64,000 bases of DNA from Azolla caroliniana (taxonomy: Eukaryota > Plantae > Polypodiophyta), in the NCBI GenBank assembly GCA_043228905.1, contig JBHGNT010000008.1:22414486-22478485 (forward strand). Direction: 5' to 3'. A program made the position numbers and the translations under genes. The number at the start of each line of letters is the position of its first letter. The first letter of the stretch is position 1. The notes beneath the pieces are model-generated. The model had not been told where the DNA came from and made no database searches. It was given only the letters and a program-made list of their open reading frames with translations. Below are positions 1 through 63,100 of this stretch, in pieces.

Positions 1-3000
1 TCGACAGACATGAAGAAATTAGTAAATTAGAGGAGGGGGTTGAGAAGAGGTCGTGAGTAAATTAAAATGTTCATATCTGGCTCCTGTGATATCGTATTTC
101 AGTGTTCAAACATGCGAATTGAAGCTAACAACGCTACTATGATATGGAATTAAAAAATCAAGATTTTGAAACTCAGGTCGATAGACATGAAGAAATTACC
201 AAATTTGAGGAGGTAGTTGAGAAAAGCGCGTGAGCAAATTAAAATGTTCATACCTGGCTCGCGTGATATTAGATTTTTGTGTTCAAAGATACAAATCGAA
301 GCTAACAATACTTGCTATGATATGGAATTAGAAAATCAAGATTTTGAAACTCAGGTCGACAGACATGAAGAAATTAGTAAATTAGAGGAGGGAGTTGAGA
401 AAAGCGCTTGAGTAAATTAAAATGTTTATACCTAGCTTGTGTGATATCGGATTTCAGTGTTCAAACATGCGAATCGAAGCTAACAACGCGAGCTATGATA
501 TGGAATTAAAAAATCAAGATTTTGAAACTCAGGTCGAGAGACATGAAGAAATTAGTAAAGTAGAGGAGGGAGTTGAGAAGAGCCCATGAGTAAATTAAAT
601 GTTCATACTTGGCTTGTGTGATATCGGATTTCAGTGTTCAAACATGCGAATCGAAGCTAACAACAGTAGCTATGATATGGAACTAAAAAAGCAAGATTTT
701 GAAACTCAGGTCGAGAGACATGAAGAAATTAGTAAATTACAAGAGGGAATTGAGAAGAGCTCGTGAGTAAATTAAAATGTTCATACCTGGCTCCTGTGAG
801 CCCGGATTATTGTGTTCAAAGATTCGAATCGAAGCTAACAACAGTAGCTATGATATGGAATTAAAAAATCAATACTTTGAAACTCAGGTCGAGAGACATG
901 AAGAAATTAGTAAATTAGAGGAGGGAGTTGAGAAGAGCTCCTGAGTAAATTAAAATGTTCATACCTGGCTGCTGTGATCCCGGATTATTGTGTTCAAAGA
1001 TTCGAATCAAAGATAACAACAGTAGCTATGATATGGAATTAAAAAATCAAGATTTTGAAACTGGGGTCGAGAGACATGAAGAAATTACCAAATTAGAGGA
1101 GGGAGTTGAGAAAAGCTCGTGAGTAAATTAAAATGTTCATAGCTGGCTCGTGTGATATCGGATTTTAGTGTTCAAACATGCGAATCGAAGCTAACAACGC
1201 TAGCTATGATATGGAATTAAAAAATCAAGATTTTGAAACTTAGGTCGATAGACATGAAGAAATTAAAAAATTAGAGGAGGGAGTTGAGAAGAGCCCGTGA
1301 GTAAATTAAAATGGTCATAACTGGGTCCTGTGATATCGGATTTTTTTGTTCAAAGATGCGAATCGAAGCTAACAACACTAGCTATGATATGGAATGAAAA
1401 AATCAAGATTTTGGAACTCAGGTCGAGAGACATGAAGAAATTAGTAAATTAGAGGAGGGAGTTGAGAAGAGCTCGTGAGTAAATTAAAATGTTCATACCT
1501 GGCTCCTGTGATCCCGGATTATTGTGTTCAAAGATTCGAATCGAAGATAACAACAGTAGCTATGATATGGATTTACAAAATCAAGATTTTGAAACTCAGG
1601 TCGAGAGACATGAAGAAATTAGTAAATTAGAGGAGGGAGTTGAGAAGAGCTCGTGAGTAAGTTAAGATGTTCATATCTGGCTCCTGTGATCCCGGATTAT
1701 TGTGTTCAAAGATTCGAATCGAAGCTAACAACGCAAGCTATGATATGGAATTTAAAAAACAAGATTTGGAAACTCAGGTCGAGAGACATGAAGAAATTCG
1801 CGAATTAGAGGAGGGAGTTGAGAAAAGCTCGTGAGTAAATTAAAATGTTCATAACGGGCTCGTGTGATATTGGATTTTAGTGTTCAAACATGCGAATCGA
1901 AGCTAACAACGCTAGCTATGATATGGAATTAGAAAATCAAGATTTTGAAACTCAGGTCGACAGACATGAAGAAATTACTAAATTTTGAGGAGGGAGTTGA
2001 GACGAGGCCGAGAGTAAATTAAAATGTTCATAGCTGGCTTGTGTGATATCGGATTTTTGTGTTCTAAGATGCAAATCGAAGCTAACAACACTAGCTATGA
2101 TATGGATTCAAAAAATCAAGACTTTGAAACTCAGGTCGAGAGACATGAAGAAATTACTAAATTAGAGGAGGGAGTTGAGAAGAGCTCCTGAGTAAATTAA
2201 AATGTTCATACCTGGCTGCTGTGATCCCGGATTATTGTGTTCAAAGATTCGAATCAAAGATAACAACAGTAGCTATGATATGGAATTAAAAAATCAAGAT
2301 TTTGAAACTGGGGTCGAGAGACATGAAGAAATTACCAAATTAGAGGAGGGAGTTGAGAAGAGCTCGTGAGTAAGTTAAGATGTTCATATCTGGCTCCTGT
2401 GATCCCGGATTATTGTGTTCAAAGATTCGAATCGAAGCTAACAACGCAAGCTATGATATGGAATTTAAAAAACAAGATTTGGAAACTCAGGTCGAGAGAC
2501 ATGAAGAAATTCGCGAATTAGAGGAGGGAGTTGAGAAAAGCTCGTGAGTAAATTAAAAGGTTCATAACGGGCTCGTGTGATATTGGATTTTAGTGTTCAA
2601 ACATGCGAATCGAAGCTAACAACGCTAGCTATGATATGGAATTAAAAAATCAAGATTTTGAAACTCAGGTCGACAGACATGAAGAAATTACTAAATTTTG
2701 AGGAGGGAGTTGAGACGAGGCCGAGAGTAAATTAAAATGTTCATAGCTGGCTTGTGTGATATCGGATTTTTGTGTTCTAGGATGCAAATCGAAGCTAACA
2801 ACACTAGCTATGATATGGATTCAAAAAATCAAGACTTTGAAACTCAGGTCGAGAGACATGAAGAAATTACTAAATTAGAGGAGGGAGTGGAGAAGAGCTC
2901 GTGAGTAAATTAAAATGTTCATACCTGGCTCGTGTGATATCGGATTTTTGTGTTCAAAGATACGAATCGAAGCTAACAACGCTAGCTATGATATGGAATT

Positions 3001-6000
3001 TAAAAAACAAGATTTGGAAACTCAGGTCGAGAGACATGAAGAAATTACCAAATTAGAGGAGGGAGTTGAGAAAAGCTCGTGAGTAAATTAAAATGTTGGT
3101 AACTGGCTCGTGTGATATCGGATTTTAGTGTTCAAACATGCGAATCGAAGCTAACAACGCTAGTTATGATATGGTATTAAAAAATCAAGATTTTGAAACT
3201 CAGGTCGACAGACTTGAAGAAATTACAAAATTTGAGGAGGGCGTTGAGAGGAGCCCTTAAGTGTAAATTAAAATATTCATAGCTGGCTCGTGTGATATCG
3301 GATTATAGTGTTGAAATATGCGAATCGAAGCTAACAACACTAGCTATGATATGGAATTAAATAATCGAGATTTTGAAACTCAGGTCGACAGACATGAAGA
3401 AATTAGTAAATTAGAGGAGGGGGTTGAGAAGAGGTCGTGAGTAAATTAAAATGTTCATATCTGGCTCCTGTGATATCGTATTTCAGTGTTCAAACATGCG
3501 AATTGAAGCTAACAACGCTACTATGATATGGAATTAAAAAATCAAGATTTTGAAACTCAGGTCGATAGACATGAAGAAATTACCAAATTTGAGGAGGTAG
3601 TTGAGAAAAGCGCGTGAGCAAATTAAAATGTTCATACCTGGCTCGCGTGATATTAGATTTTTGTGTTCAAAGATACAAATCGAAGCTAACAATACTTGCT
3701 ATGATATGGAATTAGAAAATCAAGATTTTGAAACTCAGGTCGACAGACATGAAGAAATTAGTAAATTAGAGGAGGGAGTTGAGAAAAGCGCTTGAGTAAA
3801 TTAAAATGTTTATACCTAGCTTGTGTGATATCGGATTTCAGTGTTCAAACATGCGAATCGAAGCTAACAACGCGAGCTATGATATGGAATTAAAAAATCA
3901 AGATTTTGAAACTCAGGTCGAGAGACATGAAGAAATTAGTAAAGTAGAGGAGGGAGTTGAGAAGAGCCCATGAGTAAATTAAATGTTCATACTTGGCTTG
4001 TGTGATATCGGATTTCAGTGTTCAAACATGCGAATCGAAGCTAACAACGCTAGGTATGATATGCAATTGAAAAAAAAAGATTTTAAAACTCAGGTTGAAA
4101 GGACATGAATAAATTACAAAATATGAGGACGGAGTTGAGAATAGCGTGTGAGTAAATTAAAATGTTCATACCTGGCTCGTATGATATTGGTTTTTAGTGT
4201 TCAAACATGCGAATCAAAGGTAACAACACTAGCTGTGATATAAAATTAAAAAATGAAGATTTTGAAACTCAGGTCAACAGACAGGACGGAATTAATAAAT
4301 TAGAGGAGGGAGTTGAGAAGAGCCCGTGAGTAAATAAAAATGTTCATAACTAGGTCATGTGATATCGGATTTTAGTGTTCAAACATGCGAATCGAATCTA
4401 TCTACGCTAGCTATGATATGGAATTAAAAAATTAAGATTTTCAAACTCAGGTCGAGATACATGAAGAAATTACCAAATTTGAGGAGGGAGTTGAGAAGAG
4501 CCTGAGTGAAAATTAAAATGTTCATACCTGGCTCGTGTGATATCGGATTATAGTGTTCACATGCAAATCGAACCTAAGAAGGCTACCTATGATATGGAAT
4601 TAAAAAATCAAAATTTTGAAACGCAGGTCGTCAGAAATGAAGAAATTAGTAAATTAGAGGAGGGAGTGGAGAAGAGCTCGTGAGTAGATTAAAATGATCA
4701 TACCTGGCTCCTGTGATCCCGGATTATTGTGTTCAAAGATTCGAATCGAAGCTAACAACACTAGCTATGATATGGAATTAAAAAATCAAGATTTTGAAAC
4801 TCCGGTCGACAGACATGAAGAAATTAGTAAATTTGAGGAGGGAGTTGAGAAGAGCGCGTGAGTAAATTAAAATATTCATACCTAGCTCGTGTGATATCGG
4901 ATTTTTCTGTTCAAAGATGCCAATCCAAGCTAACAACACTAGCTATGATATGGAATTAAAAAATCAAGATTTCAAAACTTAGATCGAGAGACATGAAGAA
5001 ATTCGCGAATTAGAGGAGGGAGTTGAGAAGATCCCGAGAGTAAATTAAAATGTTCATACGTGGCCCCTGTGATATCGGATTTTAGTGTTCAAACATGCAA
5101 ATCGAAGCTAACAAAGCTAGCTATGATACAAAATTAAAAAATAAAGATTTTGAAACTCAGATCGACAGACATGAAGAAATTACGAAATTTGAGGAGGGAG
5201 TTGAGTTGAGCGCGTGATTAAATTAAAATATTCATACCTGGCGCGTGTGATATCGGATTTTTGTGTTCAAAGATGCGAATCGGAGCTAACAACACTAGCT
5301 ATGATATGGAATGAAAAAAATCAAGATTTTGAAACTCATGTGAGAGACATGAAGAAATTAGTAAATTACAGGAGGGAGTTGAGAAGAGGTCGTGAGTAAA
5401 TTAAAATGTTAATACCTGGCTCCTGTGATATCGGATTTGATTGTTCAAACATGCGTATCGAAGCTAACAACACTAGCTATGATATGAAATTAAAAAAATA
5501 AGATTTTAAAACTCAGGTCGACAGACATGAAGAAATTACATAATTTGAGGAGGGAGTTCAGACGAGGCCGAGAGTAAATTAAAATGTTCATAGCTGGCTT
5601 GTGTGATATCGGATTTTTGTGTTCAAAGCTGCGAATCGAAGCTAACAACACTAGCTATGATATGGAATTAATAAATCAAGATTTTGAAACTCAGGTCGAG
5701 AGACATGAAGAAATTAGTAAATTAGAGGAGGGAGTGGAGAATAGCTCGTGAGTAAATTAAAATGTTCATACCTGGCTCGTGTGATATCGGATTTTTGTGT
5801 TCAAGGATGCGAAACGAAGCTAACAACACTAGCTATGATATGGAATTAAAAAATCAAGATTTCGAAACTTAGGTCGAGAGACATGAAGAAATTACCAAAT
5901 TTGAGGAGGGAGTTGAGAAGAGCGCGTGAGTAAATTAAAATTTTCATACCTGGCCCATGTGATATCCGATTTTAGTGTTCAAACTTGCGAATCGAAGCTA

Positions 6001-7614
6001 ACAACACTAGCTATGATATGGAATTAGAAAATCAAGATTTTGAAAGTCTTGTCGAGAGACATGAAGAAATTACGAAATTTGAGGAGGGAGTTGAGAAGAG
6101 CGCGTGAGTAAATTAAAATATTTATACCTGGCTCGTGTGATATCGGATTTTTGTGTTCAAAGATGTGAATCGAAGCTAACAACCCTAGCTATGATAAGAA
6201 ATTGAAAAATAAAGATTTCGAAACTCAGGTCGAGAGACTTGAAGAAATTCGCGAATTAGAGGAGGGAGTTGAGAAGATCCCGAGAGTAAATTAAAATGTT
6301 CATACCTGGCCCCGGTGATATCGGATTTTTGTGTTCAAACATGCGAATCGAAGCTAACAACCCTAGCTATGATATGAAATTAAAAAATCTAGATTTCGAA
6401 ACTCAGGTCGAGAGACATGAAGAAATTCGCGAATTAGAGGATGGAGTTGAGAAGGTCCCGAGAGTAAATTAAAATGTTTATACCTGGTCCCTGTGATATC
6501 GGATTTTAGTGTTCAAACATGCGAGTCGAAGCTAACAACGCTAGCTATGATACAGAATTAAAAAAGAAAGATTTTGATACTCAGGTCGACAGACATGAAG
6601 AAATTACGAAATTTGAGGAGGGAGTTGAGATGAGCGCGTGAGTAAATTAAAATATTTATACCTCGCTCGTGTGATATCGGATTTTTGTGTTCAAAGATGC
6701 GAATTGAAGCTAACAACCCTAGCTATGATATGAAATTAAAAAATGAAGATTTCGAAACTCAGGTCGAGAGACATGAAGAAATTCGCGAATTATAGGAGGG
6801 AGTTGAGAAGATCCCGAGAGTAAATTAAAATGTTCATACCTGGCCCCTGTGATATCGGATTTTAGTGTTCAAACATGCGAATCGAAGCTAACAACGCTAG
6901 CTATGATACAGAATTAAAATATAAAGATTTTGAAACTCAGGTTGAGAGACATGAAGAAATTACGAAATTTGAGGAGGGAGTTGAGAAGAGCACGTGAGTA
7001 AATTAAAATATTCATACTTGGCTTGTGTGATATCGGATTTTTGTGTTCAAAGATGCGAATCGCAGCTAACAGCATTAGCTATGATATGGAATTAAAAAAT
7101 CAAGATTTTGAAACTTAGGTGAGAGACATGAAGAAATTAGTAAATTAGAGGAGGAATTTGAGAAGAGGTCGTGAGTAAATTAAAATGTTCATACCTGGCT
7201 CCTGTGATATCGGATTTCAGTGTTCAAACATGCGAATTAAAGCTAACAACGCTAGCTATGATATGGAATTAATAAATCAAGATTTTGAAACTCAGGTCGA
7301 TAGACATGAAGAAATTACCAAATTTGAGGAGGGAGTTGAGAAGAGCGCGTGAGTAAATTAAAATGTTCATACCTGGCCCATGTGATATCCGATTTTAGTG
7401 TTCAAACATGCGAATCGAAGCTAACAACACTAGCTATGATATGGAATTAGGAAATCAAGATTTTGAAACTCAGGTCGAGGGACATGAAGAAATTACCAAA
7501 TTTGAGGAGGGAGTTGAGAAGAGCGCGTGAGTAAATTAAAATATTCATACCTGGCTCGTGTGATATCGAATTTTTGTGTTCAAAGATGCGAATCGAAGCT
7601 AACAACACTAGCTA
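1..7614 (+). repeat. 178-bp tandem satellite, diverged (older) variant layer
   Basis: Head-to-tail ~178-bp monomers (gagtaaattaaaatgttcatacctggctcgtgtgatatcgg...gaggagggagttgaga). The diagnostic variant gacatgaagaaattagtaaattagagg predominates, with many private substitutions. Confidence 0.97.
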
Positions 7615-7615
7615 C

Positions 7616-7705
7616 GAATTGTGAGTTCTAGACCGTGAGGTCAATACAAGGAGTGCGAAGGGTATACAATCGGTGGGTGAATGTGAGATTAAGAGTGAGA
7701 ATTAT

Positions 7706-7736
<31 letters not shown>

Positions 7737-7847
7737 GAGATAGAGAGAGATATGTACAAAGAATTGTGAGTTCTAGACCGTGAGGTCAATACAAGGAGTG
7801 CGAACGGTATACAATCGGTGGGTGAATGTGAGATTAAGAGTGAGAAT

Positions 7848-7935
<88 letters not shown>

Positions 7936-7943
7936 TGTACAAA
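7616..7943 (-). repeat. Tandem duplication of the terminal segment of the left PLE arm
   Basis: gaattgtgagttctagaccgtgagg...(ga)n tatgtacaaa occurs at 7616-7760 and 7761-7943. The copies differ mainly in GA tract length. Confidence 0.9.
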
Positions 7944-8008
7944 GTTTAGAGAGAGAGAAATAGACTAAAGACTAATTCATATTAAGAAACTTAAAAAGTA
8001 ATACAAAG

Positions 8009-8070
8009 AAATGGTCGATGTGGTAAACTAGTTTCGCTCCTACGGAGCTCATCAGTGCACAAGACCATTT
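8009..8070 (-). ncRNA. Minimal type I hammerhead ribozyme (left arm)
   Basis: Minus strand reads AAATGGTC-TTGTGCA-CTGATGA-GCTCC-gta-GGAGC-GAAAC-TA-GTT^-TACCACATC-GACCATTT. It has the complete core, a 5-bp stem II and an 8-bp distal stem I. There is a C.A mismatch in proximal stem I. Confidence 0.85.
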
Positions 8071-8083
8071 AGAATTGGAGGGG

Positions 8084-8091
8084 TTTATATA
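8084..8091 (-). promoter_or_regulatory. TATA box upstream of the left hammerhead
   Basis: Minus strand reads ccc-TATATAAA-ccc, ~14 nt before the ribozyme. The position mirrors the right arm. Confidence 0.55.
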
Positions 8092-8105
8092 GGGAAGATA
8101 AGGGA

Positions 8106-8158
<53 letters not shown>

Positions 8159-8780
8159 TAGTGTGTGTGTGTGTGTTCAAATTTGATGATGTAGGAGATA
8201 TGGGGTTTGATATATTTGGTGTGGGATAGAAGATTTTTTGGGGTTATTTGAAAAACATGTAGGGGAGTGTGAGAGAGAAAGAGAGAGGAAGGGTAAGAGA
8301 GAAGTGTGTGAGGTGGGAGTTAGGGATGGTGAAGTACGTTAGAATGTATGGAGATCTTTGAAAAAAGGAGGGGGGTAGGAAGAATTGGAGGGTATATTGG
8401 AAATTAAAGTGGAGGAGGAAAGGGTAGAGTGAGATTAAGAAGAATGAAAGGGGGAGGGGTACGAGAAATTTACTAAAAGAGGGAGGGGTATGAATGTAAT
8501 TCTGGAAAAAAGGAAGGGGGAAAGGGGTAGATTGAAATTAATGAACGAGACAGGGGTAGAGTAAATTGACAAAGTGGGAATGAAGTGAAAAGATCACCAA
8601 GAACGATTCAAGCGCACCCAAATCGTTTCATATACTTGGCGTGAGTTAGGGAAAGGTAGGGGTAATGTTAGAGTGGCAATGAAAAAGTAAAGGGAGGGGT
8701 AGAAGATCAAATTAGGAAAAATAAGGCTCCGGACTGTGTATGACAGCCGGCCTATAGATCTACAACCCCCCCTCCATGGC

Positions 8781-8967
8781 ATGATGCACGGGACTGCACA
8801 AGGCAGCCGTCATGGATACATGCCCCCTCTCCTCCCAACCCCACACATGTATTATGAAGAAAACAATGTCTCCCACCTATGTAACCCTAATCTTCCCCAC
8901 TCCTCTCTCCCCCCACGCAACCTCTCTGTACAAATAGCTCCCTCCTCCTCCTCCTCCCCCCCCCCCC
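8781..8967 (+). CDS. Probable N-terminal part of PLE ORF1, out of frame at a C12 homopolymer
   Basis: MMHGTAQGSRHGYMPPLLPTPHMYYEENN...SSSSSPPP. One extra C at 8956-8967 would join it to the ORF1 frame (PSFSHSFPHPPPPTP...MDTPSPF). Confidence 0.4.
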
Positions 8968-9034
8968 TCCCTCTTTCTCTCACTCGTTCCCCCATCCTCC
9001 TCCTCCTACCCCCTTTTTACTTTCTAAATATTAC

Positions 9035-9520
9035 ATGGATACCCCCTCCCCCTTTTTGTCTAATTCTTACTCTACCCACCCCCCTTATGTTGAAGAATTC
9101 CATTCAAACCCCCCACAATTTTCTTCCATTTATCACTCTACACCTCCCCCATTATCATCTAATTTTCATAATGCCCTTCCCCACCTTTTTTCAAATCCTT
9201 ACCCTACCCATACCCCTTTAATTAGCCCACATCACTCTCATTATACTTATCATTCCCCCCCAACACATCCTCCATATTCAACTCATCTCCCCCCTACACA
9301 TCCTCCATATTACACTAACCCCCCCCCCCCCTTTCTTCCTAATAAAAAAACCCCCAACTTTTATTCTCACACCCCCTTTCTTCCTAACACAAAAACCCCC
9401 AACTTTTCTTCTAACACTCCCTCACATAAAAACTATAAACACTATCAAAATACATCAAAACCTTGTCCTCCCCCAAAACCACTAGGAGACCCACAACCTA
9501 GTAGACCAAAAAACGGTTAG
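9035..9520 (+). CDS. PLE ORF1, Pro/His/Ser/Tyr/Asn-rich low-complexity protein (frame open from 8891)
   Basis: 161 aa from the first ATG. Internal 33-bp and 45-bp duplications keep the frame. It ends immediately after a slippery heptamer that overlaps the RT frame. Confidence 0.65.
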   Translation: MDTPSPFLSNSYSTHPPYVEEFHSNPPQFSSIYHSTPPPLSSNFHNALPHLFSNPYPTHTPLISPHHSHYTYHSPPTHPPYSTHLPPTHPPYYTNPPPPFLPNKKTPNFYSHTPFLPNTKTPNFSSNTPSHKNYKHYQNTSKPCPPPKPLGDPQPSRPKNG

Positions 9521-9573
9521 CTAGGCGTGCTAAACGCGTTAACAAACGGTTTAGACACGTCGTACACCCTAGC
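9508..9573 (+). promoter_or_regulatory. Predicted programmed -1 ribosomal frameshift signal
   Basis: A_AAA_AAC (9508-9514) in ORF1 phase, a 5-nt spacer, then a stem-loop GCTAGG/CCTAGC, CGTG/CACG, CTAAAC/GTTTAG, CGTT/AACG. The -1 frame is open from 9505 into the RT. Confidence 0.75.
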
Positions 9574-11493
9574 AAACGTTTATTCTACCTACTTAATAGA
9601 TCCCCCTCCACCCAAGACACATATATGTGGTTTGGGGGAAAACAGAAACTATTTCCCTTCCTTTCACACCCCAAATCCCAAAATAAAAAACCTAGAACCA
9701 ACTTCTGGAAACCTCTTACTAGTACACAAGTAATTCATAGTAAAATCCATAACCTCTCTAAACATAACCTCACTAAAAATGAAACACAATTGCTAAACCT
9801 AGGCCTTAAGTATATCCTACCATCCCCACCTCCCTCACCCAACAATATCCTAAAAGAATTCACCCACCTCTCGAGATCCCTCAAGCTAAAACATTTTTTT
9901 AGAAATACACCTTCACTTCCTCTCAACCCCTTCAAACTACCTAACCCTAGTTGGATGCCACCCACAGAATATCCACCCCTAGTCTCCATAATAGAAAAAC
10001 ACCAACACATCCTTAACCAAATAGCACACAACACTAAGCCCATAAACACTAGAATCCCATACCACCTCTCTAGAGCCTTTAAAAGCCTCCAACACAACAA
10101 ACACATTATCATCCTCCCAGCCGATAAAAATATGGGAGTATGTGTTCTAGATAAAGACACATACTACACCAAAGCCATAGAACACCTCTCGAATTCTACC
10201 ACCTATAAGAGAGTCAACCACTTCCCCTTGGAAGAGTTACTATACCGCCTTAATAACATAATAACAAACCACTTAGGTACACTTTCCCCAATTGAAGCTA
10301 ATTTCATCCTCCACAAACCCAAAAAAGGATATCAAGTATCCAACCTCTATTTCCTCCCTAAATTACACAAAACACCTATGGGTTTCCGGCCCATTTGTTC
10401 ATATAATAACTCCTTATTTGAACAAACATCGAAGTGGTTACACCACCAACTTTTACCAATCCTCCTTCTCCAACCACAATATCTAAAAGACTCTCACACA
10501 CTAATCCAATCACTAGAAAACCTACACCCACCATCTAATAGTTTCTTATTCACGTTTGACGTTGAATCTCTCTATCCTAGTATCCCCCCTAAGTTAGGAC
10601 TCCAAGCCCTACGTAGTCTAATCACCCCCCACTTTTCCCCTTCGAAAACAAATCTCATCTATACCCTTAGTGCCCTTATTTTAGAATATCACTATCTCAC
10701 TTTTGATGACGTAGTTTACCAACAAATAAAAGGTACGGCCATGGGTAGCAACTTTTCAGTCGTATATGCATGCCTCTTTTTAGTATATCTCGAAAACTTA
10801 CAACCATCGCCCCCCCATCTCTTCTACTTCACCCGCTATATTGATGATGCATTTGGGGTCTGGACAGGCACCAAATCTCAACTTTTAGAATATCTCGACT
10901 TTTACCCTTCACACACAAATAACTCCATCAAGCTTACCATTCAAACTTCCCCCTTTCGGCTACCTTTTTTAGACATATGGATCAACCTCCAAAATTCATC
11001 TTTCTTATTCAATTGTTTTCAAAAACCTCTCAATTCATACCAATACTTGCCTTTTTCATCGGATCATCCTTCCCATACGAAACAACACTTTATCACTAAT
11101 GAAGTGAAGAGATATCTTATTAGAGAAAGCACCCCATTAGGTTTCTACCAAATGAAAAAACTCTTTTTCAATAGACTAGTTAACCGTGGTTACCCTCCAT
11201 CCTTTATACTAAAAAGCTATAAGAAAATACCTTTTAGTCTTAGAAAAACACTCCTATATCAACCCAAAACTATTACTTCCCTTAACCCCACAATCTTTAA
11301 ACTTAGATACACCAAACATACCCCAAAACTAGGCATTCATAGTTTTCTAAAAAATCTCTATAATGACTTAATGTTAGATCCCGAGCTTACAAGCATCTCA
11401 CGCCCTTTCGTATGTTGGACAAAATCTAAGTCCTTACATGCCCTCCTAGTTAAGACTAAGTTTTCAAAAAATCCACCAAAATCCTCCACTTAA
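9514..11493 (+). CDS. Penelope-like reverse transcriptase without GIY-YIG endonuclease (first in-frame ATG 9625)
   Basis: PLE motifs: NLSKHNLTKNETQLLNLGLKY, IIILPADKNMG, YFLPKLHK..RPI, FDVESLYPSIP, QIKGTAMGS, RYIDD, LPFLDI, QKPLNSYQYLPFSSDHP. The ORF is uninterrupted and ends without GIY-YIG motifs. Confidence 0.93.
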   Translation, partial: RLARRAKRVNKRFRHVVHPSKRLFYLLNRSPSTQDTYMWFGGKQKLFPFLSHPKSQNKKPRTNFWKPLTSTQVIHSKIHNLSKHNLTKNETQLLNLGLKYILPSPPPSPNNILKEFTHLSRSLKLKHFFRNTPSLPLNPFKLPNPSWMPPTEYPPLVSIIEKHQHILNQIAHNTKPINTRIPYHLSRAFKSLQHNKHIIILPADKNMGVCVLDKDTYYTKAIEHLSNSTTYKRVNHFPLEELLYRLNNIITNHLGTLSPIEANFILHKPKKGYQVSNLYFLPKLHKTPMGFRPICSYNNSLFEQTSKWLHHQLLPILLLQPQYLKDSHTLIQSLENLHPPSNSFLFTFDVESLYPSIPPKLGLQALRSLITPHFSPSKTNLIYTLSALILEYHYLTFDDVVYQQIKGTAMGSNFSVVYACLFLVYLENLQPSPPHLFYFTRYIDDAFGVWTGTKSQLLEYLDFYPSHTNNSIKLTIQTSPFRLPFLDIWINLQNSSFLFNCFQKPLNSYQYLPFSSDHPSHTKQHFITNEVKRYLIRESTPLGFYQMKKLFFNRLVNRGYPPSFILKSYKKIPFSLRKTLLYQPKTITSLNPTIFKLRYTKHTPKLGIHSFLKNLYNDLMLDPELTSISRPFVCWTKSKSLHALLVKTKFSKNPPKSST

Positions 11494-11650
11494 AACTAAG
11501 TTTTAAAACAATCCACCAAAATCCCCCACTTAAGACTAAATTTTCAAACAATCCACCCAAATCCCCCACTTAAGACTAAAGTTTCAAACAATCCACCCAA
11601 ATCCCCCACTTAACACTAAGTTTTCAAATAATTCACCCACATCCCCCACT
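11451..11650 (+). repeat. Five copies of a 40-bp minisatellite overlapping the RT stop codon
   Basis: taagactaagttttcaaacaatccacccaaatcccccact-type units start at 11451, 11491, 11531, 11571 and 11611. Confidence 0.92.
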
Positions 11651-11756
11651 TAATATTATCCCAAATCCCCCTTTTTCATCACATTAAAAACTCCCCCCTC
11701 ACCATCATCATTATACTAATTTCCCTTCTCTCATTCCCTATCACTTTCCTACACAC

Positions 11757-11795
<39 letters not shown>

Positions 11796-11880
11796 CCACA
11801 TTCTATTCTCTCGCATCTACTACACAAATCAAATCCTCCCCACTCCTTTTTCTCTCACTCCCTCTTCCTTCCCACCCCTT

Positions 11881-11887
11881 TATAAAT
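11881..11887 (+). promoter_or_regulatory. TATA box upstream of the right hammerhead
   Basis: cccctt-TATAAAT, ~19 nt before the ribozyme. Confidence 0.55.
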
Positions 11888-11905
11888 CACATTCTCTTGT
11901 TGTAA

Positions 11906-11960
11906 TGGTCTTTGCACTGAAGAGCTCCACTATTGAGCGAAACTAGTTTGCCTAAGACCA
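11906..11960 (+). ncRNA. Minimal type I hammerhead ribozyme (right arm)
   Basis: TGGTCTT-T-GCA-CTGAAGA-GCTC-cactatt-GAGC-GAAAC-TA-GTT^-TGC-CT-AAGACCA. It has the full core, stem I with an internal loop, and a palindromic AACTAGTT stem III. Predicted cleavage is after 11948. Confidence 0.9.
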
Positions 11961-11981
11961 CCACCCTCTTTGAATTAAAAA

Positions 11982-12027
<46 letters not shown>

Positions 12028-12124
12028 GTGTATGTTGCCTACTTTCTCTTGTTTAGCTTCAGCACCCTCTAATTGTCTTGTGCCTATCTCTACGCACTCC
12101 TTGTTTCCACCATTTGGTTCTAGT

Positions 12125-15100
12125 AAGAAATTAGTAAATTAGAGGAGGGAGTTGAGAAGAGGTCGTGAGTAAATTAAAATGTTCATACCTGGCTCCTGTG
12201 ATATCGGATTTCAGTGTTCAAACATGCGAATCGAAGCTAACAATGCTACCTATGATATGGAATAAAAAAATCATGATTCCGAAACTCAGGTCGAGAGACA
12301 TGAAGAAATTCGCGAATTAGAGGAGGGAGTTGAGAAGAGCCCGAGAGTAAATTAAAACGTTCATACCTGGCTCCTGTGATCCTGGATTTTTGTGTTCAAA
12401 GATTGGAATCGAAGCTAACAACAGTAGCTATGATATGGAATTAAAAAATCAAGATTTTGAAACTCAGGTCGACAGACATCAAGAAATTACCAAATTTGAG
12501 GAGGGAGTTGAGAAGAGCGCGTGAGTAAATTAAAATATTCATACCTGGCTCGTGTGATATCGGATTTTTGTGTTCAAAGATGCGAATCGAAGCTAACAAC
12601 GCTAGCTATGATATGGAATTAAAAAATCACGATTTTGAAACTCAGGTGAGAGACATGAAGAAATTAATAAATTAGAGGAGGGAGGAGAGAAGAGCTCGTG
12701 AGTAAATTAAAATGTTCATATCTGGCTCCTGTGATATCGGATTTCAGTGTTCAAACATGCGAATCGAAGCTAAACACGCTAGCTATGATATGGAATTAGA
12801 AAAACAAGATTTTAAAACTCAGGTTGACAGACATGAAGAAATTACCAAATTTCAGGACGGAGTTGAGGAAAGCGTTGTCGAGGTATTCCTCGCGGATGCG
12901 TGGAAAGAGGCGTAACCTCGGGGGTCCTGTACCAAAGAGCAAGAGAGGAGGGGAAGAATCCCTCTACGTGCGAGCGTAGATCCACAGATTTTGAAACTCA
13001 GGTCGATACACATGAAGAAATAACCAAATTTGAGGAGGGAGTTGAGAAGAGCGCGTGAGTAAATTATAAAGTTCATAGATGGCTCGTGTGATATCGGATT
13101 TTAGTGTTCAAACATGCGAATCGAAGCTAACAAGGCTAGCTATGATATGGAATTAAAAAATTTGGATTTTGAAACTCATGTGAGAGACATGAAGAAATTA
13201 GTAAATTAGAGGAGGGAGTTGAGAAGAGTCCGAGAGTAAATTAAAATGCTCATAGCTGGCTCGTGTGATATCGGATTTTAGTGTTCAAAGATGCGAATCG
13301 AAGCTAACAACGCTACCTATGATATGGAATTAAAAAATCAAGATATTGAAACGCAGGTCGTCAGACATGAAGAAAAATTAGTAAATTAGAGGAGGGAGTT
13401 GAGAAGAGGTCGTGAGTAAATTAAAATGTCCATACCTGGATCCTGTGATCCCGGATTTTTGTGTTCAAAGATGCGAATCGAAGCTAACAACGCTAACTAT
13501 GATATGGAATATAAAAAATCAAGATTTTAAAACTCATGTCGACAGACATGAAGAAATTACAAAATTTGAGGAGGGAGTTGAGAAAAGCCCGAGAGTAGAT
13601 TAAAATGTTAATATCTGGCTCGTGTGATATCGGATTTTAGTGTCCAAACATGCGAATAGAAGCTAACAATGCTACCTATGATATGGAATTAAAAAATCAA
13701 GATTTTGAAACTCAGGTGAGAGACATGAAGAAATTAGTAAATTAAAGGAGGGAGTTGAGAAGAGCCCGAGAGTAAATTAAAATGTTCATAGCTAGCTCAT
13801 GTGATATCGGAATTTTAGTGTTCAAAGATGCGAATCGAAGCTAACAATGCTACCTATGATATGGAATTAAAAAATCAAGATTTTGAAACTCAGGTCGATA
13901 GACCTGAAGAAATTACAAAATTAGAGGAGGGAGTTGAGAAAAGCTCGTGAGTAAATTAAAATATTCATACCTGGCTCGTGTGATATCGGATTTCTGTGTT
14001 CAAAGATGCGAATCGAAGCTAACAACACTAGCTATAATATCGAATTAAAAAATCAAGATTTTGAAACTCAGGTCGAGAGACATGAATAAATTAGTAAATT
14101 AGAGGAGGGGATTGAGAAGAGCTCGTGAGTAAACTAAAATGTTCATACCTGGCTCCTGTGATCCCGGATTATTGTGTTCAAAGATTCGAATCGAAGCTAA
14201 CAACAGTAGCTATGATATCGAATTAAAAAATCAAGATTTTGAAACTCAGGTCGAGAGACATGACGAAATTACCAAATTTGAGGAGTGAGTTGAGAAGAGC
14301 TAGTAGGTATATTTAAATGTTCATACCTGGCTCGTGTGATATTGGATTGTTGTGTTCAAACATGCGAATCGAAGCTAACAACGCTAGCTATGATATGGAA
14401 TTAAAAAATCAATATTTTGAAACTCAGGTGGAGAGACATGACGAAAATAGCAAACTTGATGAGGGAGTTGATAGGAGCCCTTGAGTAAATTAAAATGTTC
14501 ATACCCAGCTCGTGTGATATCGGATTTTTGTGTTAAAAGATGGGAATCGAAGCTAACAATAGTAGCTATGATATGGAATTAAAAAATCAAGATTTTGAAA
14601 CTCAGATCGACAGATATGAAGAAATTACCAAATTTGAGGAGGGAGTTGAGAAGAGCGCGTGAGTAAATTCAAATGTTGATACCTGGCCCATGTGATATGC
14701 AATTTTGGTGTTCCAACATGCGAATCGAAGCTAACAACAGTAGCTATGATATGGAATTAAAAAATCAACATTTTGAAATTCAGGTCGAGAGACATGAAGA
14801 AATTAGTAAATTAGAGAAGGGAGTTGAGAAGAGCTGGTGAGTAAATTAAAATGTTCATACCTGGCTCGTGTGATATCAGATTTTTTTTGTTCAAAGACGC
14901 GAATCGAAGCTAATAACAGTAGTTATGATATGGAATTAAAAAATCAAGATTTTGAAACTCAGGTCGATAGACATGAAGAAATTACCAAATTAGAGCAGGG
15001 AGTTGCGAAAACCTCGTGAGTAAATTAAAATGTTCATACCTGGCTCATGTGATATCGGATTTCTGTGTTCAAAGATGCGAATCGAAGCTAACAATGCTAC

Positions 15101-60100: not shown

Positions 60101-63100
60101 GCCCTTGAGTAAATTAAAATGTTCATACCTGGCTCGTGTGATATCGGATTTTTGTGTTCAAACATGCAAATCGAAGCTTGAAACGCTAGCTATGATATGG
60201 AATTAAAAAATCAAGATTTTTAAACTCAGGTCGAGAGACATGACGAAAATAGCAAACTTGAGGAGGGAGTTGAGAGGAGCCCTTGAGTAAATTAAAATGT
60301 TCATACCTGGCTCGTGTGATATCGGATTTTTGTGTTCAAACATGCGAATCGAAGCCAACAACGCTAGCTATCATATGGAATTAAAACATCAAGATTTTGA
60401 AACCCAGGTCGAGAGACATGACGAAAATAGCAAACTTGAGGAGGGAGTTGAGAACAGCCCTTGAGTAAATTAAAATGTTCATACCTGGCTCGTGTGATAT
60501 CGGATTTTTGTGTTCAAACATGCGAATCGAAGCCAACAACGCTAGCTATCATATGGAATTAAAACATCAAGATTTTGAAACCCAGGTCGAGAGACATGAC
60601 GAAAATAGCAAACTTGAGGAGGGAGTTGAGAACAGCCCTTGAGTAAATTAAAATGTTCATACCTGGCTCGTGTGATATCGGATTTTTGTGTTCAAACATG
60701 CGAATCGAAGCCAACAACGTTAGCTATGATATGGAATTAAAAAATCAAGATTTTGAAACCCAGGTCGAGAGACATGACGAAAATAGCAAACTTGAGGAGG
60801 GAGTTGAGAGGAGCCCTTGAGTAAATTAAAATGTTCATACCTGGCTCGTGTGATATCGGATTTTTGTGTTCAAACATGCGAATCAAAGCTAACAACGCTA
60901 GCTATGATATGGAATTAAAAAATCAAGATTTTGAAACTCAGGTCGAGAGACATGACGAAAATAGCAAACTTGAGGAGGGAGTTGAGAGGAGCCCTTGAGT
61001 AAATTAAAATGTTCATACCTGGCTCGTGTGATATCGGATTTTTGTGTTCAAACATGCGAATCGAAGCCAACAACGCTAGCTATGATATGGAATTAAAAAA
61101 TCAAGATTTTGAAACCCAGGTCGAGAGACATGACGAAAATAGCAAACTTGAGGAGGGAGTTGAGAGGAGCCCTTGAGTAAATTAAAATATTCATACCTGG
61201 CTCGTGTGATATCGGATTTTTGTGTTCAAACATGCGAATCAAAGCTAACAACGCTAGCTATGATATGGAATTAAAAAATCAAGATTTTGAAACTCAGGTC
61301 GAGAGACATGACGAAAATAGCAAACTTGAGGAGGGAGTTGAGAGGAGCCCTTGAGTAAATTAAAATGTTCATACCTGGCTCGTGTGATATCGGATTTTTG
61401 TGTTCAAACATGCGAATCGAAGCCAACAACGTTAGCTATGATATGGAATTAAAAAATCAAGATTTTGAAACCCAGGTCGAGAGACATGACGAAAATAGCA
61501 AACTTGAGGAGGGAGTTGAGAACAGCCCTTGAGTAAATTAAAATGTTCATACCTGGCTCGTGTGATATCGGATTTTTGTGTTCAAACATGCGAATCGAAG
61601 CCAACAACGCTAGCTATCATATGGAATTAAAACATCAAGATTTTGAAACCCAGGTCGAGAGACATGACGAAAATAGCAAACTTGAGGAGGGAGTTGAGAA
61701 CAGCCCTTGAGTAAATTAAAATGTTCATACCTGGCTCGTGTGATATCGGATTTTTGTGTTCAAACATGCGAATCGAAGCCAACAACGTTAGCTATGATAT
61801 GGAATTAAAAAATCAAGATTTTGAAACCCAGGTCGGATTTTTGTGTTCAAACATGCGAATCAAAGCTAACAACGCTAGCTATGATATGGAATTAAAAAAT
61901 CAAGATTTTGAAACTCAGGTCGAGAGACATGACGAAAATAGCAAACTTGAGGAGGGAGTTGAGAGGAGCCCTTGAGTAAATTAAAATGTTCATACCTGGC
62001 TCGTGTGATATCGGATTTTTGTGTTCAAACATGCGAATCGAAGCCAACAACGTTAGCTATGATATGGAATTAAAAAATCAAGATTTTGAAACCCAGGTCG
62101 AGAGACATGACGAAAATAGCAAACTTGAGGAGGGAGTTGAGAACAGCCCTTGAGTAAATTAAAATGTTCATACCTGGCTCGTGTGATATCGGATTTTTGT
62201 GTTCAAACATGCGAATCGAAGCCAACAACGCTAGCTATGATATGGTATTAAAAAATCAAGATTTTGAAACCCAGGTCGAGAGACATGACGAAAATAGCAA
62301 ACTTGAGGAGGGAGTTGAGAGGAGCCCTTGAGTAAATTAAAATGTTCATACCTGGCTCGTGTGATATCGGATTTTTGTGTTCAAACATGCGAATCGAAGC
62401 CAACAACGTTAGCTATGATATGGAATTAAAAAATCAAGATTTTGAAACCCAGGTCGAGAGACATGACGAAAATAGCAAACTTGAGGAGGGAGTTGAGAGG
62501 AGCCCTTGAGTAAATTAAAATGTTCATACCTGGCTCGTGTGATATCGGATTTTTGTGTTCAAACATGCGAATCGAAGCCAACAACGTTAGCTATGATATG
62601 GAATTAAAAAATCAAGATTTTGAAACCCAGGTCGAGAGACATGACGAAAATAGCAAACTTGAGGAGGGAGTTGAGAACAGCCCTTGAGTAAATTAAAATG
62701 TTCATACCTGGCTCGTGTGATATCGGATTTTTGTGTTCAAACATGCGAATCGAAGCCAACAACGCTAGCTATCATATGGAATTAAAACATCAAGATTTTG
62801 AAACCCAGGTCGAGAGACATGACGAAAATAGCAAACTTGAGGAGGGAGTTGAGAACAGCCCTTGAGTAAATTAAAATGTTCATACCTGGCTCGTGTGATA
62901 TCGGATTTTTGTGTTCAAACATGCGAATCGAAGCCAACAACGCGAGCTTTGATATGGAATTAAAAAATCAAGATTTTGAAACTCAGGTCGAGAGACATGA
63001 CGAAAATAGCAAACTTGAGGAGGGAGTTGAGAGGAGCCCTTAAGTAATTAAAATATTCATACCTGGCTCGTGTGATATCGGATTTTTGTGTTCAAACATG

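Follow-up and report, generated by a model that had tools for sequence, protein, structure and literature searches.

Results

The 64-kb stretch of Azolla caroliniana DNA analysed in this work (contig JBHGNT010000008.1, positions 22,414,486 to 22,478,485 of the forward strand; hereafter the window) is made up of a 178-bp satellite, located with Tandem Repeats Finder at 1-7614 and 12127-64000, and of one insert of about 4.5 kb between these arrays. We propose that the insert is a mixed-family, head-to-head composite of Penelope-like elements (PLEs), probably formed during the repair of one double-strand break in which two RNAs were reverse transcribed and the complementary DNAs (cDNAs) were joined to each other. 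The composite is a by-product of the insertion mode of these elements, and not a new two-armed element. It carries on the + strand a reverse transcriptase (RT) open reading frame (ORF) placed between two outward-facing cassettes, each composed of (CT)n, TATA, a type-I hammerhead ribozyme, (CT)n, the motif CGCACTCCTTGT and GGT..CTAG. This layout, with one RT unit between two diverged arms and the order (CT)n, TATA, hammerhead, (CT)n, sequence and GGT(T)CTAG in both, had been read correctly in the initial annotation, as had the location in satellite DNA devoid of telomeric repeats: the whole window is free of telomeric repeats in tandem (two units), and isolated CCCTAAA occurs once in the entire insert and in neither arm.

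The right part of the insert and its relatives

For comparison we fetched contigs encoding the closest RTs, which represent eight RT-linked families (L001-L034), and a generic hammerhead pattern for the clade recovered 33 more metagenome contigs. Full-length family members contain an ORF1 of about 811 aa, which the initial annotation had missed, a 105-nt gap, a 622-aa RT ORF and about 340 nt of 3' untranslated region (3' UTR), followed by the hammerhead, (CT)n and the tail motif, with the ATG of the next ORF1 about 45 nt further on. Window positions 8722-12128 are collinear with 17 contigs of the same family (L012-L028) at 88-91% identity, and in 17 out of 17 the homology starts at 8722, inside ORF1 at about residue 571. 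The ORF1 remnant has a frameshift between 8930 and 9026. The RT ORF has the same length as those of its relatives and 94% DNA identity to them, the differences falling on third codon positions about twice as often as on first or second ones. Judged from its sequence, 8722-12124 is a 5'-truncated copy of a two-ORF, endonuclease-less PLE, and a non-autonomous one, since it is truncated inside ORF1 at 8722 and the remnant is frameshifted.

Between families, ORF1 (for example L013:118-2553) is kept at 36-43% identity over its N-terminal ~450 aa, and its C-terminal half is proline-rich and of low complexity. No Pfam domain, GIY-YIG included, was detected in the ORF1 of the relatives, and a word-based search found ORF1 homologues only within the same assembly set. 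Canonical PLEs have a single ORF, as opposed to two in this clade.

The relatives are arranged directly. Both hammerheads of L021 (at 94 and 5071) lie on the same strand, L020 and L025 present the order RT-hammerhead-ORF1, and the direct order RT-hammerhead-tail-ORF1 was found in these three contigs and in about 20 of the 33 further ones, from at least eight families. The left arm of the window is absent from all of the approximately 40 related contigs, which are arranged head-to-tail, and no clear inverted arm was seen among them. Direct pseudo-long terminal repeats (pseudo-LTRs) in other RT copies, never accompanied by this left arm, were what the initial annotation had named beforehand as the finding that would speak against its proposal of a stable bipartite element with two 3' ends, and this is what the ~40 contigs contain. 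Two other candidate structures were discarded. Minus-strand genes upstream of the RT in L001 and L008-L011, considered as inverted arms, are gene-caller artefacts on the low-complexity half of ORF1, and the twin covarying hairpins at 8729-8815 fall in a stretch that is conserved ORF1 coding sequence in all relatives.

The 3' ends of the RT family in other contigs lie at several positions within about 20 nt after ...CCATTTGGTTTT, next to at least five different flanks, which fits the variable "tail" and the internal initiation known for the class (PMC11167929). Array neighbours often come from different families or subfamilies, always tail-to-ORF1 (L043, L047, L049, L055, L057; in one example an RT at 91% is followed by an ORF1 at 96% and an RT at 100%), as if elements had been added successively or templates had been switched between families. 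Two RT-family copies with slightly different 3' ends stand tail to tail in L023:5734-6546, about 730 bp apart across unique sequence. In L051:131-1348, at low coverage, a + strand hammerhead and an antisense RT fragment (residues 192-564) lie within 70 bp; the contig either is chimeric or holds a further unusual junction.

The left arm as a separate family

Seven contigs (L038, L052, L058, L060, L062, L063 and L065) match window 7612-8721 over its full length, with 85-94% identity by BLAST and 93-95% without gaps, and in 7/7 the homology stops at 8721, even with the query extended to 9000. They define a family with a unit of about 1.8 kb (L038:1481-3275), present as head-to-tail units in at least five contigs. 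The unit starts like the autonomous elements, with the same few bases and ATGGAG, has retained 44 codons from the beginning of ORF1 (45-48% identity, E about 5e-5) and closes with a hammerhead cassette and tail of its own; neither an RT nor a long ORF was found in this family across the seven contigs. By these features the left-arm family derives from a two-ORF element by internal deletion and is non-coding.

On the scale of this unit, window position 8721 falls at about 652, so that the inner copy represents the 3' 64% of the unit. The outer copy (7616-7760) is a direct repeat of the last 145 nt of the inner one, 97-98% identical, and together they make a partial head-to-tail tandem. Past 8721, contigs of run X9 that match the left arm continue with sequence unlike that of the window, namely the family sequence immediately preceding unit position 652, in reverse complement, which is expected for a truncated copy and not for a chimeric read.

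The initial annotation had asked whether the left arm always joins the RT at about 8750 or also occurs alone; its family occurs alone, without RT, in the seven contigs. The argument that an inverted pseudo-LTR should be nearly identical to its partner is inapplicable, because the RT unit does not have the left arm as its pseudo-LTR. The other suggestion of the initial annotation, that an autonomous RT RNA was co-inserted with a non-coding, retrozyme-like partner, comes close to the data as regards the partner, which belongs to a separate ~1.8-kb hammerhead family, but not for the RT unit, which is not autonomous.

Other identities were considered for the left arm. It has stops in all frames and no ORF1 similarity, and as the 3' UTR of an RT-linked family it was rejected because across the eight families (L001-L034) similarity is limited to the hammerhead cassette (66-80%). 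Its exact 30-nt hammerhead has no match in the metagenome contigs; in those of its own family the helix II loop differs from that of the window by one base. The resemblance of L023:517-647 to window 8577-8710 (130 nt), tried as a shared arm, comes down to a small hairpin-containing module at differing positions. This inverted-repeat module (CACCAAG ... GGGTGCGCTCCAAT ... CTTGGTG) lies at window 8577-8645, L023:560-647 and L063:2310-2355, about 900 nt before the tail in the left arm of the window and about 50-100 nt before it in L023 and L063. The last unit of L063 has a different, ~630-nt region between hammerhead and tail. At L063:2409-3076, in another assembly, the non-autonomous family adjoins diverged 178-bp satellite in a different unit phase, so that satellite of this type received a separate insertion there. 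In run X1 the contig depth of left-arm pieces is about twice that of RT pieces; depth is not copy number, and we did not rely on it.

The four joins

Three pieces, the outer and inner left copies and the RT-family copy, are thereby placed with their identity, orientation and truncation points, and both families exist independently of each other. All four joins of the insert have microhomology of 2-6 nt. At the left flank, CTA at 7612-7614 (TAG/CTA) is common to the satellite and to the end of the left-arm element; the tail of a tandem unit reads ...CACAATTTGTAG and the window ...CACAATTCGTAG, followed by satellite. Where the outer left copy meets the inner one (7760/7761), TTTGTA is common to the break point of the first template and to the 3' tail of the family. 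The head-to-head join has two to three assignable nucleotides (Table 1), and at the right flank AAGA (12125-12128), 4 nt, is shared by the RT-family tail and the satellite. The right-flank satellite resumes 50 bp (modulo 178) beyond the left stop, that is, about 50 bp of satellite are absent, and there is no target-site duplication at the insert ends. The divergence from the respective relatives is equal for the two arms, with nucleotide identities of 94% for the RT ORF and 93-95% for the left arm. Strand composition switches at 8721/8722, from 73% purine on the left side to 34% on the right, and a protein search with the 62-aa ORF spanning this point gave no candidate. The sense strand of both families is extremely G-poor in 7615-12124, with 6% G in both arms and 7-10% in the ORFs, so that their cDNA strand is G-rich, as reported for telomeric retrotransposons.

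Hammerheads and tails

The motif CTGANGAGCTC-N3-12-GAGCGAAAC is found at exactly two places in the 64 kb, 8031-8055 (-) and 11917-11943 (+), with 0 expected in 100 shuffles of the window. No Rfam model matched the window at gathering score. An E-value search gave sub-threshold matches to Hammerhead_3 (22.8 bits, 8026-8070, -) and HH9 (15.2 bits, 11904-11968, +), the hammerhead matches of this kind being confined to the two motif sites. When folded with the catalytic core constrained as unpaired, both sequences form type-I hammerheads with a closed helix I, a helix II of 4-5 bp and a helix III of 1 bp capped by the palindromic loop CUAG. The same fold is predicted for ten variants, which come from eight families. 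Compensatory changes were seen in the distal helix I (GGUCUU/AAGACC, GACCUU/AAGGUC, AUGACCUA/UAGGUCAU and AAAUGGUC/GACCAUUU), and the helix III loop stays palindromic across the variants, either CUAG or CAUG. The "minimal hammerhead" of the initial annotation is indeed present in both arms, but is better labelled a canonical type I with a minimal helix III. Given the 1-bp helix III and the palindromic loop, activity would be expected in dimers only (PMC4209133). As the two hammerheads are on opposite strands, they cannot share one transcript.

The left and right arms can be aligned only across the ~50-nt hammerhead core, at 86% identity, which together with the common order of elements agrees with the earlier view that they are homologous in functional motifs only. 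The motif CGCACTCCTTGT is invariant in at least five families and, within the window, confined to the arm tails; the tail signature common to the clade is CGCACTCCTTGT-N9-10-GGT. Sister families (P0007 and P0008) have degenerate CCCTAAA repeats between hammerhead and tail motif (L032:3006-3054; L008:5706-6116; also L009-L011), CCCTAAA being the reverse complement of the plant telomere repeat and a hallmark of telomere-attaching endonuclease-less elements. In L015 an RT-family copy ends at about 5144 and is followed by about 108 bp of satellite-like sequence (76% to the 178-bp unit, reverse orientation) and then by (TTTAGGG)x6 at 5373-5413.

The reverse transcriptase

Pfam gave no domain match for the three ORFs of the window, the RT ORF included, and a PDB sequence search with the RT gave none either. 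Among 207 RT homologues, many with the GIY-YIG domain (PF01541), the best ~50 all lack this domain and the distant ones have it. The closest (P0001-P0008, from ENA and Logan assemblies) show 64-93% identity; for the RTs of Cryptomeria, Selaginella, Ginkgo and Closterium, identity in the best local alignment is 32-41%. P0121, which is 93% identical to the RT, matches RVT_1 at 4.4e-5, under the curated cut-off. With P0055, a protein with RVT_1 above threshold and GIY-YIG, identity is 31% over 550 aa (E 8e-59). RT residues 41-544 align with P0055, and the ORF stops about 78 aa after the alignable RT/thumb; P0055 continues about 240 aa beyond this end, with GIY-YIG at residues 704-785. The CxC motif, a trait of Chlamys "PLE-X", is absent from the 622-aa translation.

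In a FastTree phylogeny of 109 rows, the window RT falls inside a nine-row clade (support 100), which is nested in a clade of land-plant proteins, among them those of Selaginella, Cryptomeria and Ginkgo (support 99), and every GIY-YIG row lies outside a 72-row clade (support 95). The phylogeny called for in the initial annotation therefore places the RT in a land-plant endonuclease-less clade with Selaginella; we leave this clade without a name, as the tree had no labelled Athena or Coprina rows. From its homology to the P0055 RT and from an ORF without GIY-YIG, the window RT is endonuclease-less and Penelope-like, in agreement with the initial annotation. Traits of PLEs found here are the RT homology, the partial-tandem pseudo-LTRs of the relatives, the 5' truncation of both window copies and the hammerhead in a terminal repeat.

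Feature coordinates

Positions of the features are collected in Table 1. Copies of the 40-bp repeat at 11450-11653 pair with the repeats of relatives in several registers (BLAST), so that their number probably differs between element copies. Near the end of the window, the satellite at 61390-62278 is organised locally in higher-order repeats with periods of 87, 265 and 443 bp (95-97% identity), and units from 61833 to the window end are 97% alike, as opposed to 75% matches and 6% indels in the long array; this block looks recently homogenised.

Table 1. Features of the insert and of the satellite units that flank it (window coordinates).
Feature	Position	Strand	Remarks
Final left-flank satellite unit	7437..7614		ends ...CTAGCTA; left-arm family homology begins 7612
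Outer partial copy, last ~145 nt of unit	7615..7760	-	93-94% to L038, L052, L060, L065
Outer copy tail motif CGCACTCCTTGT	7646-7657	-	
Outer copy (CT)n	7706-7750	-	
Inner copy, 5'-truncated, non-coding	7761..8721	-	about unit positions 652-1795
Left arm GGTCTAG	about 7774-7780	-	
Left arm tail motif CGCACTCCTTGT, inner copy	7791-7802	-	
Left arm (GA)n	7851-7933	-	
Left hammerhead, type I	8009-8070	-	predicted cleavage between 8026 and 8025
Left arm TATATAAA	8085-8092	-	just upstream of hammerhead
Left arm (GT/GA)n	8108-8176	-	
Head-to-head join of two 5'-truncated copies	8719..8722		TA/TAA assignable to either partner
ORF1 remnant, about residues 571-811 of ~811, two frames	8722..9520	+	by collinearity and tblastn
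RT ORF, intact, 622 aa, Penelope-like, without GIY-YIG	9625-11493	+	
40-bp tandem repeat, five copies (3' UTR)	11450..11653	+	starts inside RT ORF end
Right arm upstream (CT)n	11761-11791	+	
Right arm TATAAA	11881-11886	+	
Right hammerhead, type I	11904-11962	+	predicted cleavage after 11948
Right arm 3' end of RT-family copy	11984..12128	+	AAGA 12125-12128 common with satellite
Right arm downstream (CT)n	11984-12023	+	
Right arm tail motif CGCACTCCTTGT	12093-12104	+	
Right arm terminal GGTTCTAG	12115-12122	+	
First right-flank satellite unit	12125..12302		phase shifted 50 bp vs left-flank stop

Discussion

As these elements encode no endonuclease, a free DNA 3' end is needed for their insertion. 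We infer that a single break in the satellite provided two of them. The right DNA end would have paired over 4 nt with the 3' tail of an RNA from the autonomous family, carrying ORF1 and RT, and its extension over 3.4 kb would have stopped inside ORF1. The left DNA end would have paired over 3 nt with the 3' tail of an RNA from the non-autonomous ~1.8-kb family, and after 145 nt had been copied, a template switch via the 6-nt TTTGTA to the 3' end of another RNA from the same family may have allowed the copying of 961 nt more, which would produce the partial tandem. In the final step, the two incomplete cDNAs would be joined head to head via the 2-3 nt overlap, with the loss of about 50 bp of satellite. 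Since each cDNA would be primed at the 3' tail of its family, each arm bears its own 3' cassette pointing outward, with a promoter-like TATA, the hammerhead, (CT)n and the tail. The order of these events, like any role of the ribozymes, is hypothetical. The inserted copies run about 175 nt beyond the predicted cleavage site, so that the templates were not cleaved at the 3' hammerhead.

The signature CGCACTCCTTGT-N9-10-GGT is probably the feature recognised by the shared RT. If so, the non-coding family could parasitise this enzyme, and its use in trans of an autonomous RT is suggested by the shared ends and by the invariance of CGCACTCCTTGT in at least five families.

Some points weigh against this interpretation. 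No independent read or contig spans 8721/8722, where the short Logan contigs have a gap, and the join rests on one assembly. The comparison contigs come from other samples and are about 6-10% diverged. Moreover, the data do not distinguish a single event from two in succession at this site, and mobilisation in trans by the RT would rest solely on the shared ends.

Two successive insertions would mean that a truncated first copy was followed by a later break at its 5' boundary, healed by the other family in the opposite orientation. Elements do accumulate in this satellite, as the insertions of L063 and L015 in or beside satellite of the 178-bp type indicate, and head-to-tail arrays commonly bring members of different families next to each other (L043, L047, L049, L055, L057). 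However, the second break would be required exactly at the 5' end of the earlier copy, there is no satellite between the arms, and the equal divergence of both arms from their relatives gives no sign of differing ages; we therefore consider this course of events unlikely. An assembly artefact, or a later rearrangement within the satellite such as an inversion or a recombination between nearby elements, is suggested by the nature of the region, 64 kb of satellite that is hard to assemble, in which no independent contig bridges 8721/8722, and complex PLE insertions are known to cause assembly problems (Craig et al. 2021, PMC8557442). Against it, the joins are clean and have short microhomologies, the outer ends are defined 3' termini of elements against satellite, and the loose end in run X9 continues the family past 8721 as it would for a truncated copy, which makes such an origin very unlikely.

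A stable bipartite element with two 3' ends, transposing as a unit, would account for the fact that the two arms have the same terminal motif and each a cassette that is complete and looks functional. Nevertheless, its RT side would consist of a truncated element with a frameshifted ORF1 remnant, the ~40 related contigs have the direct arrangement only, the left-arm family occurs alone as tandems, and one RNA cannot bear two outward-facing sense 3' ends. Such an element is thus highly improbable, and repair of one break by two families remains our preferred explanation. An extension of it, which we put forward as no better than a doubtful conjecture, is that head-to-head composites of autonomous and non-autonomous elements are a regular product of this plant RT, which would bridge break ends with two tail-recognised templates, the ~1.8-kb parasite, a plant counterpart of the animal retrozymes, spreading largely in this way. 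A Penelope-like RT has been predicted to dimerise (PMC11167929).

PLE insertions are frequently 5'-truncated and form partial tandems, and "often" an inverted 5'-truncated copy lies beside the 5' end (Craig et al. 2021, PMC8557442, Fig. 2). The window is similar in its two head-to-head 5'-truncated copies, its one-sided partial tandem and its variable 3' "tail", but the inverted partner comes from a different, non-autonomous family and the elements lack an endonuclease, so that the two primers were probably break ends and not two nicked strands. A purified Penelope-like protein is able to extend both strands of the target DNA in vitro (Frangieh et al. 2024, PMC11167929).

A parallel can be drawn with human L1. 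In its twin priming and endonuclease-independent insertion at breaks, both ends prime, inverted 5'-truncated segments are produced, the joins have microhomology, and the target has a deletion instead of a duplication. However, L1 twin priming uses one RNA, whereas two (probably three) RNAs of two families and a telomerase-related RT would have been involved here.

Endonuclease-deficient PLEs of Selaginella and other eukaryotes were reported by Gladyshev and Arkhipova (2007), as related in PMC8557442 and PMC4209133. The window element resembles them in its RT without GIY-YIG, its canonical type-I hammerhead in the terminal repeat and its position in a land-plant clade with a Selaginella protein, and its sister families in having reverse-complement telomeric repeats next to the hammerhead. 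It differs in that its arms have (CT)n where the sister families have CCCTAAA repeats, and in that full-length elements of its clade have an extra ORF1 of ~811 aa with no known domain. The hammerhead form of the Selaginella elements is also the "canonical type I" (PMC4209133). Unlike Athena and Coprina, with their telomere location, the insert lies inside 64 kb of 178-bp satellite with no tandem telomeric repeat. In the endonuclease-less Chlamys "PLE-X" of Selaginella and Chara, the RT is preceded on its N-terminal side by a zinc-finger-like CxC motif (Craig et al. 2021, PMC8557442); the window RT ORF has no CxC.

Metazoan non-LTR retrozymes have been proposed as non-autonomous derivatives of PLEs (Li, Clavereau and Pollet 2026 preprint, doi 10.64898/2026.07.22.740005; PMC11722881). 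The left-arm family is like them in being non-coding, with one type-I hammerhead per unit, head-to-tail tandems and ends in common with autonomous PLEs. It differs in its occurrence in a plant, in its ~1.8-kb unit compared with 170-400 nt and in its 44-codon remnant of ORF1. Metazoan retrozymes give circular RNA. The plant retrozymes described so far are of the LTR type, with type-III hammerheads in direct LTRs, a primer-binding site (PBS) and a polypurine tract (PPT) (PMC11722881); in contrast, the left-arm family has type I (open helix I) and partial tandems instead of LTRs.

According to these data, the two-armed shape of the insert needs no new kind of element, as it follows from the insertion mode. 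New in degree are a diverse plant clade of two-ORF endonuclease-less PLEs that resides in the 178-bp satellite with (CT)n in place of telomere-complement repeats, and a hammerhead-bearing, non-autonomous derivative of ~1.8 kb in a plant; such derivatives of PLEs are described only for animals in the retrozyme review (PMC11722881). The locus would be a clean natural record of an endonuclease-less, telomerase-related RT patching an internal chromosome break, in which, if our interpretation is right, both ends were primed and three RNA templates from two families were used, with microhomology at every join. With both families, two questions can be put to the test in a plant: by whom parasites with ribozymes are mobilised, and what function the hammerhead has.

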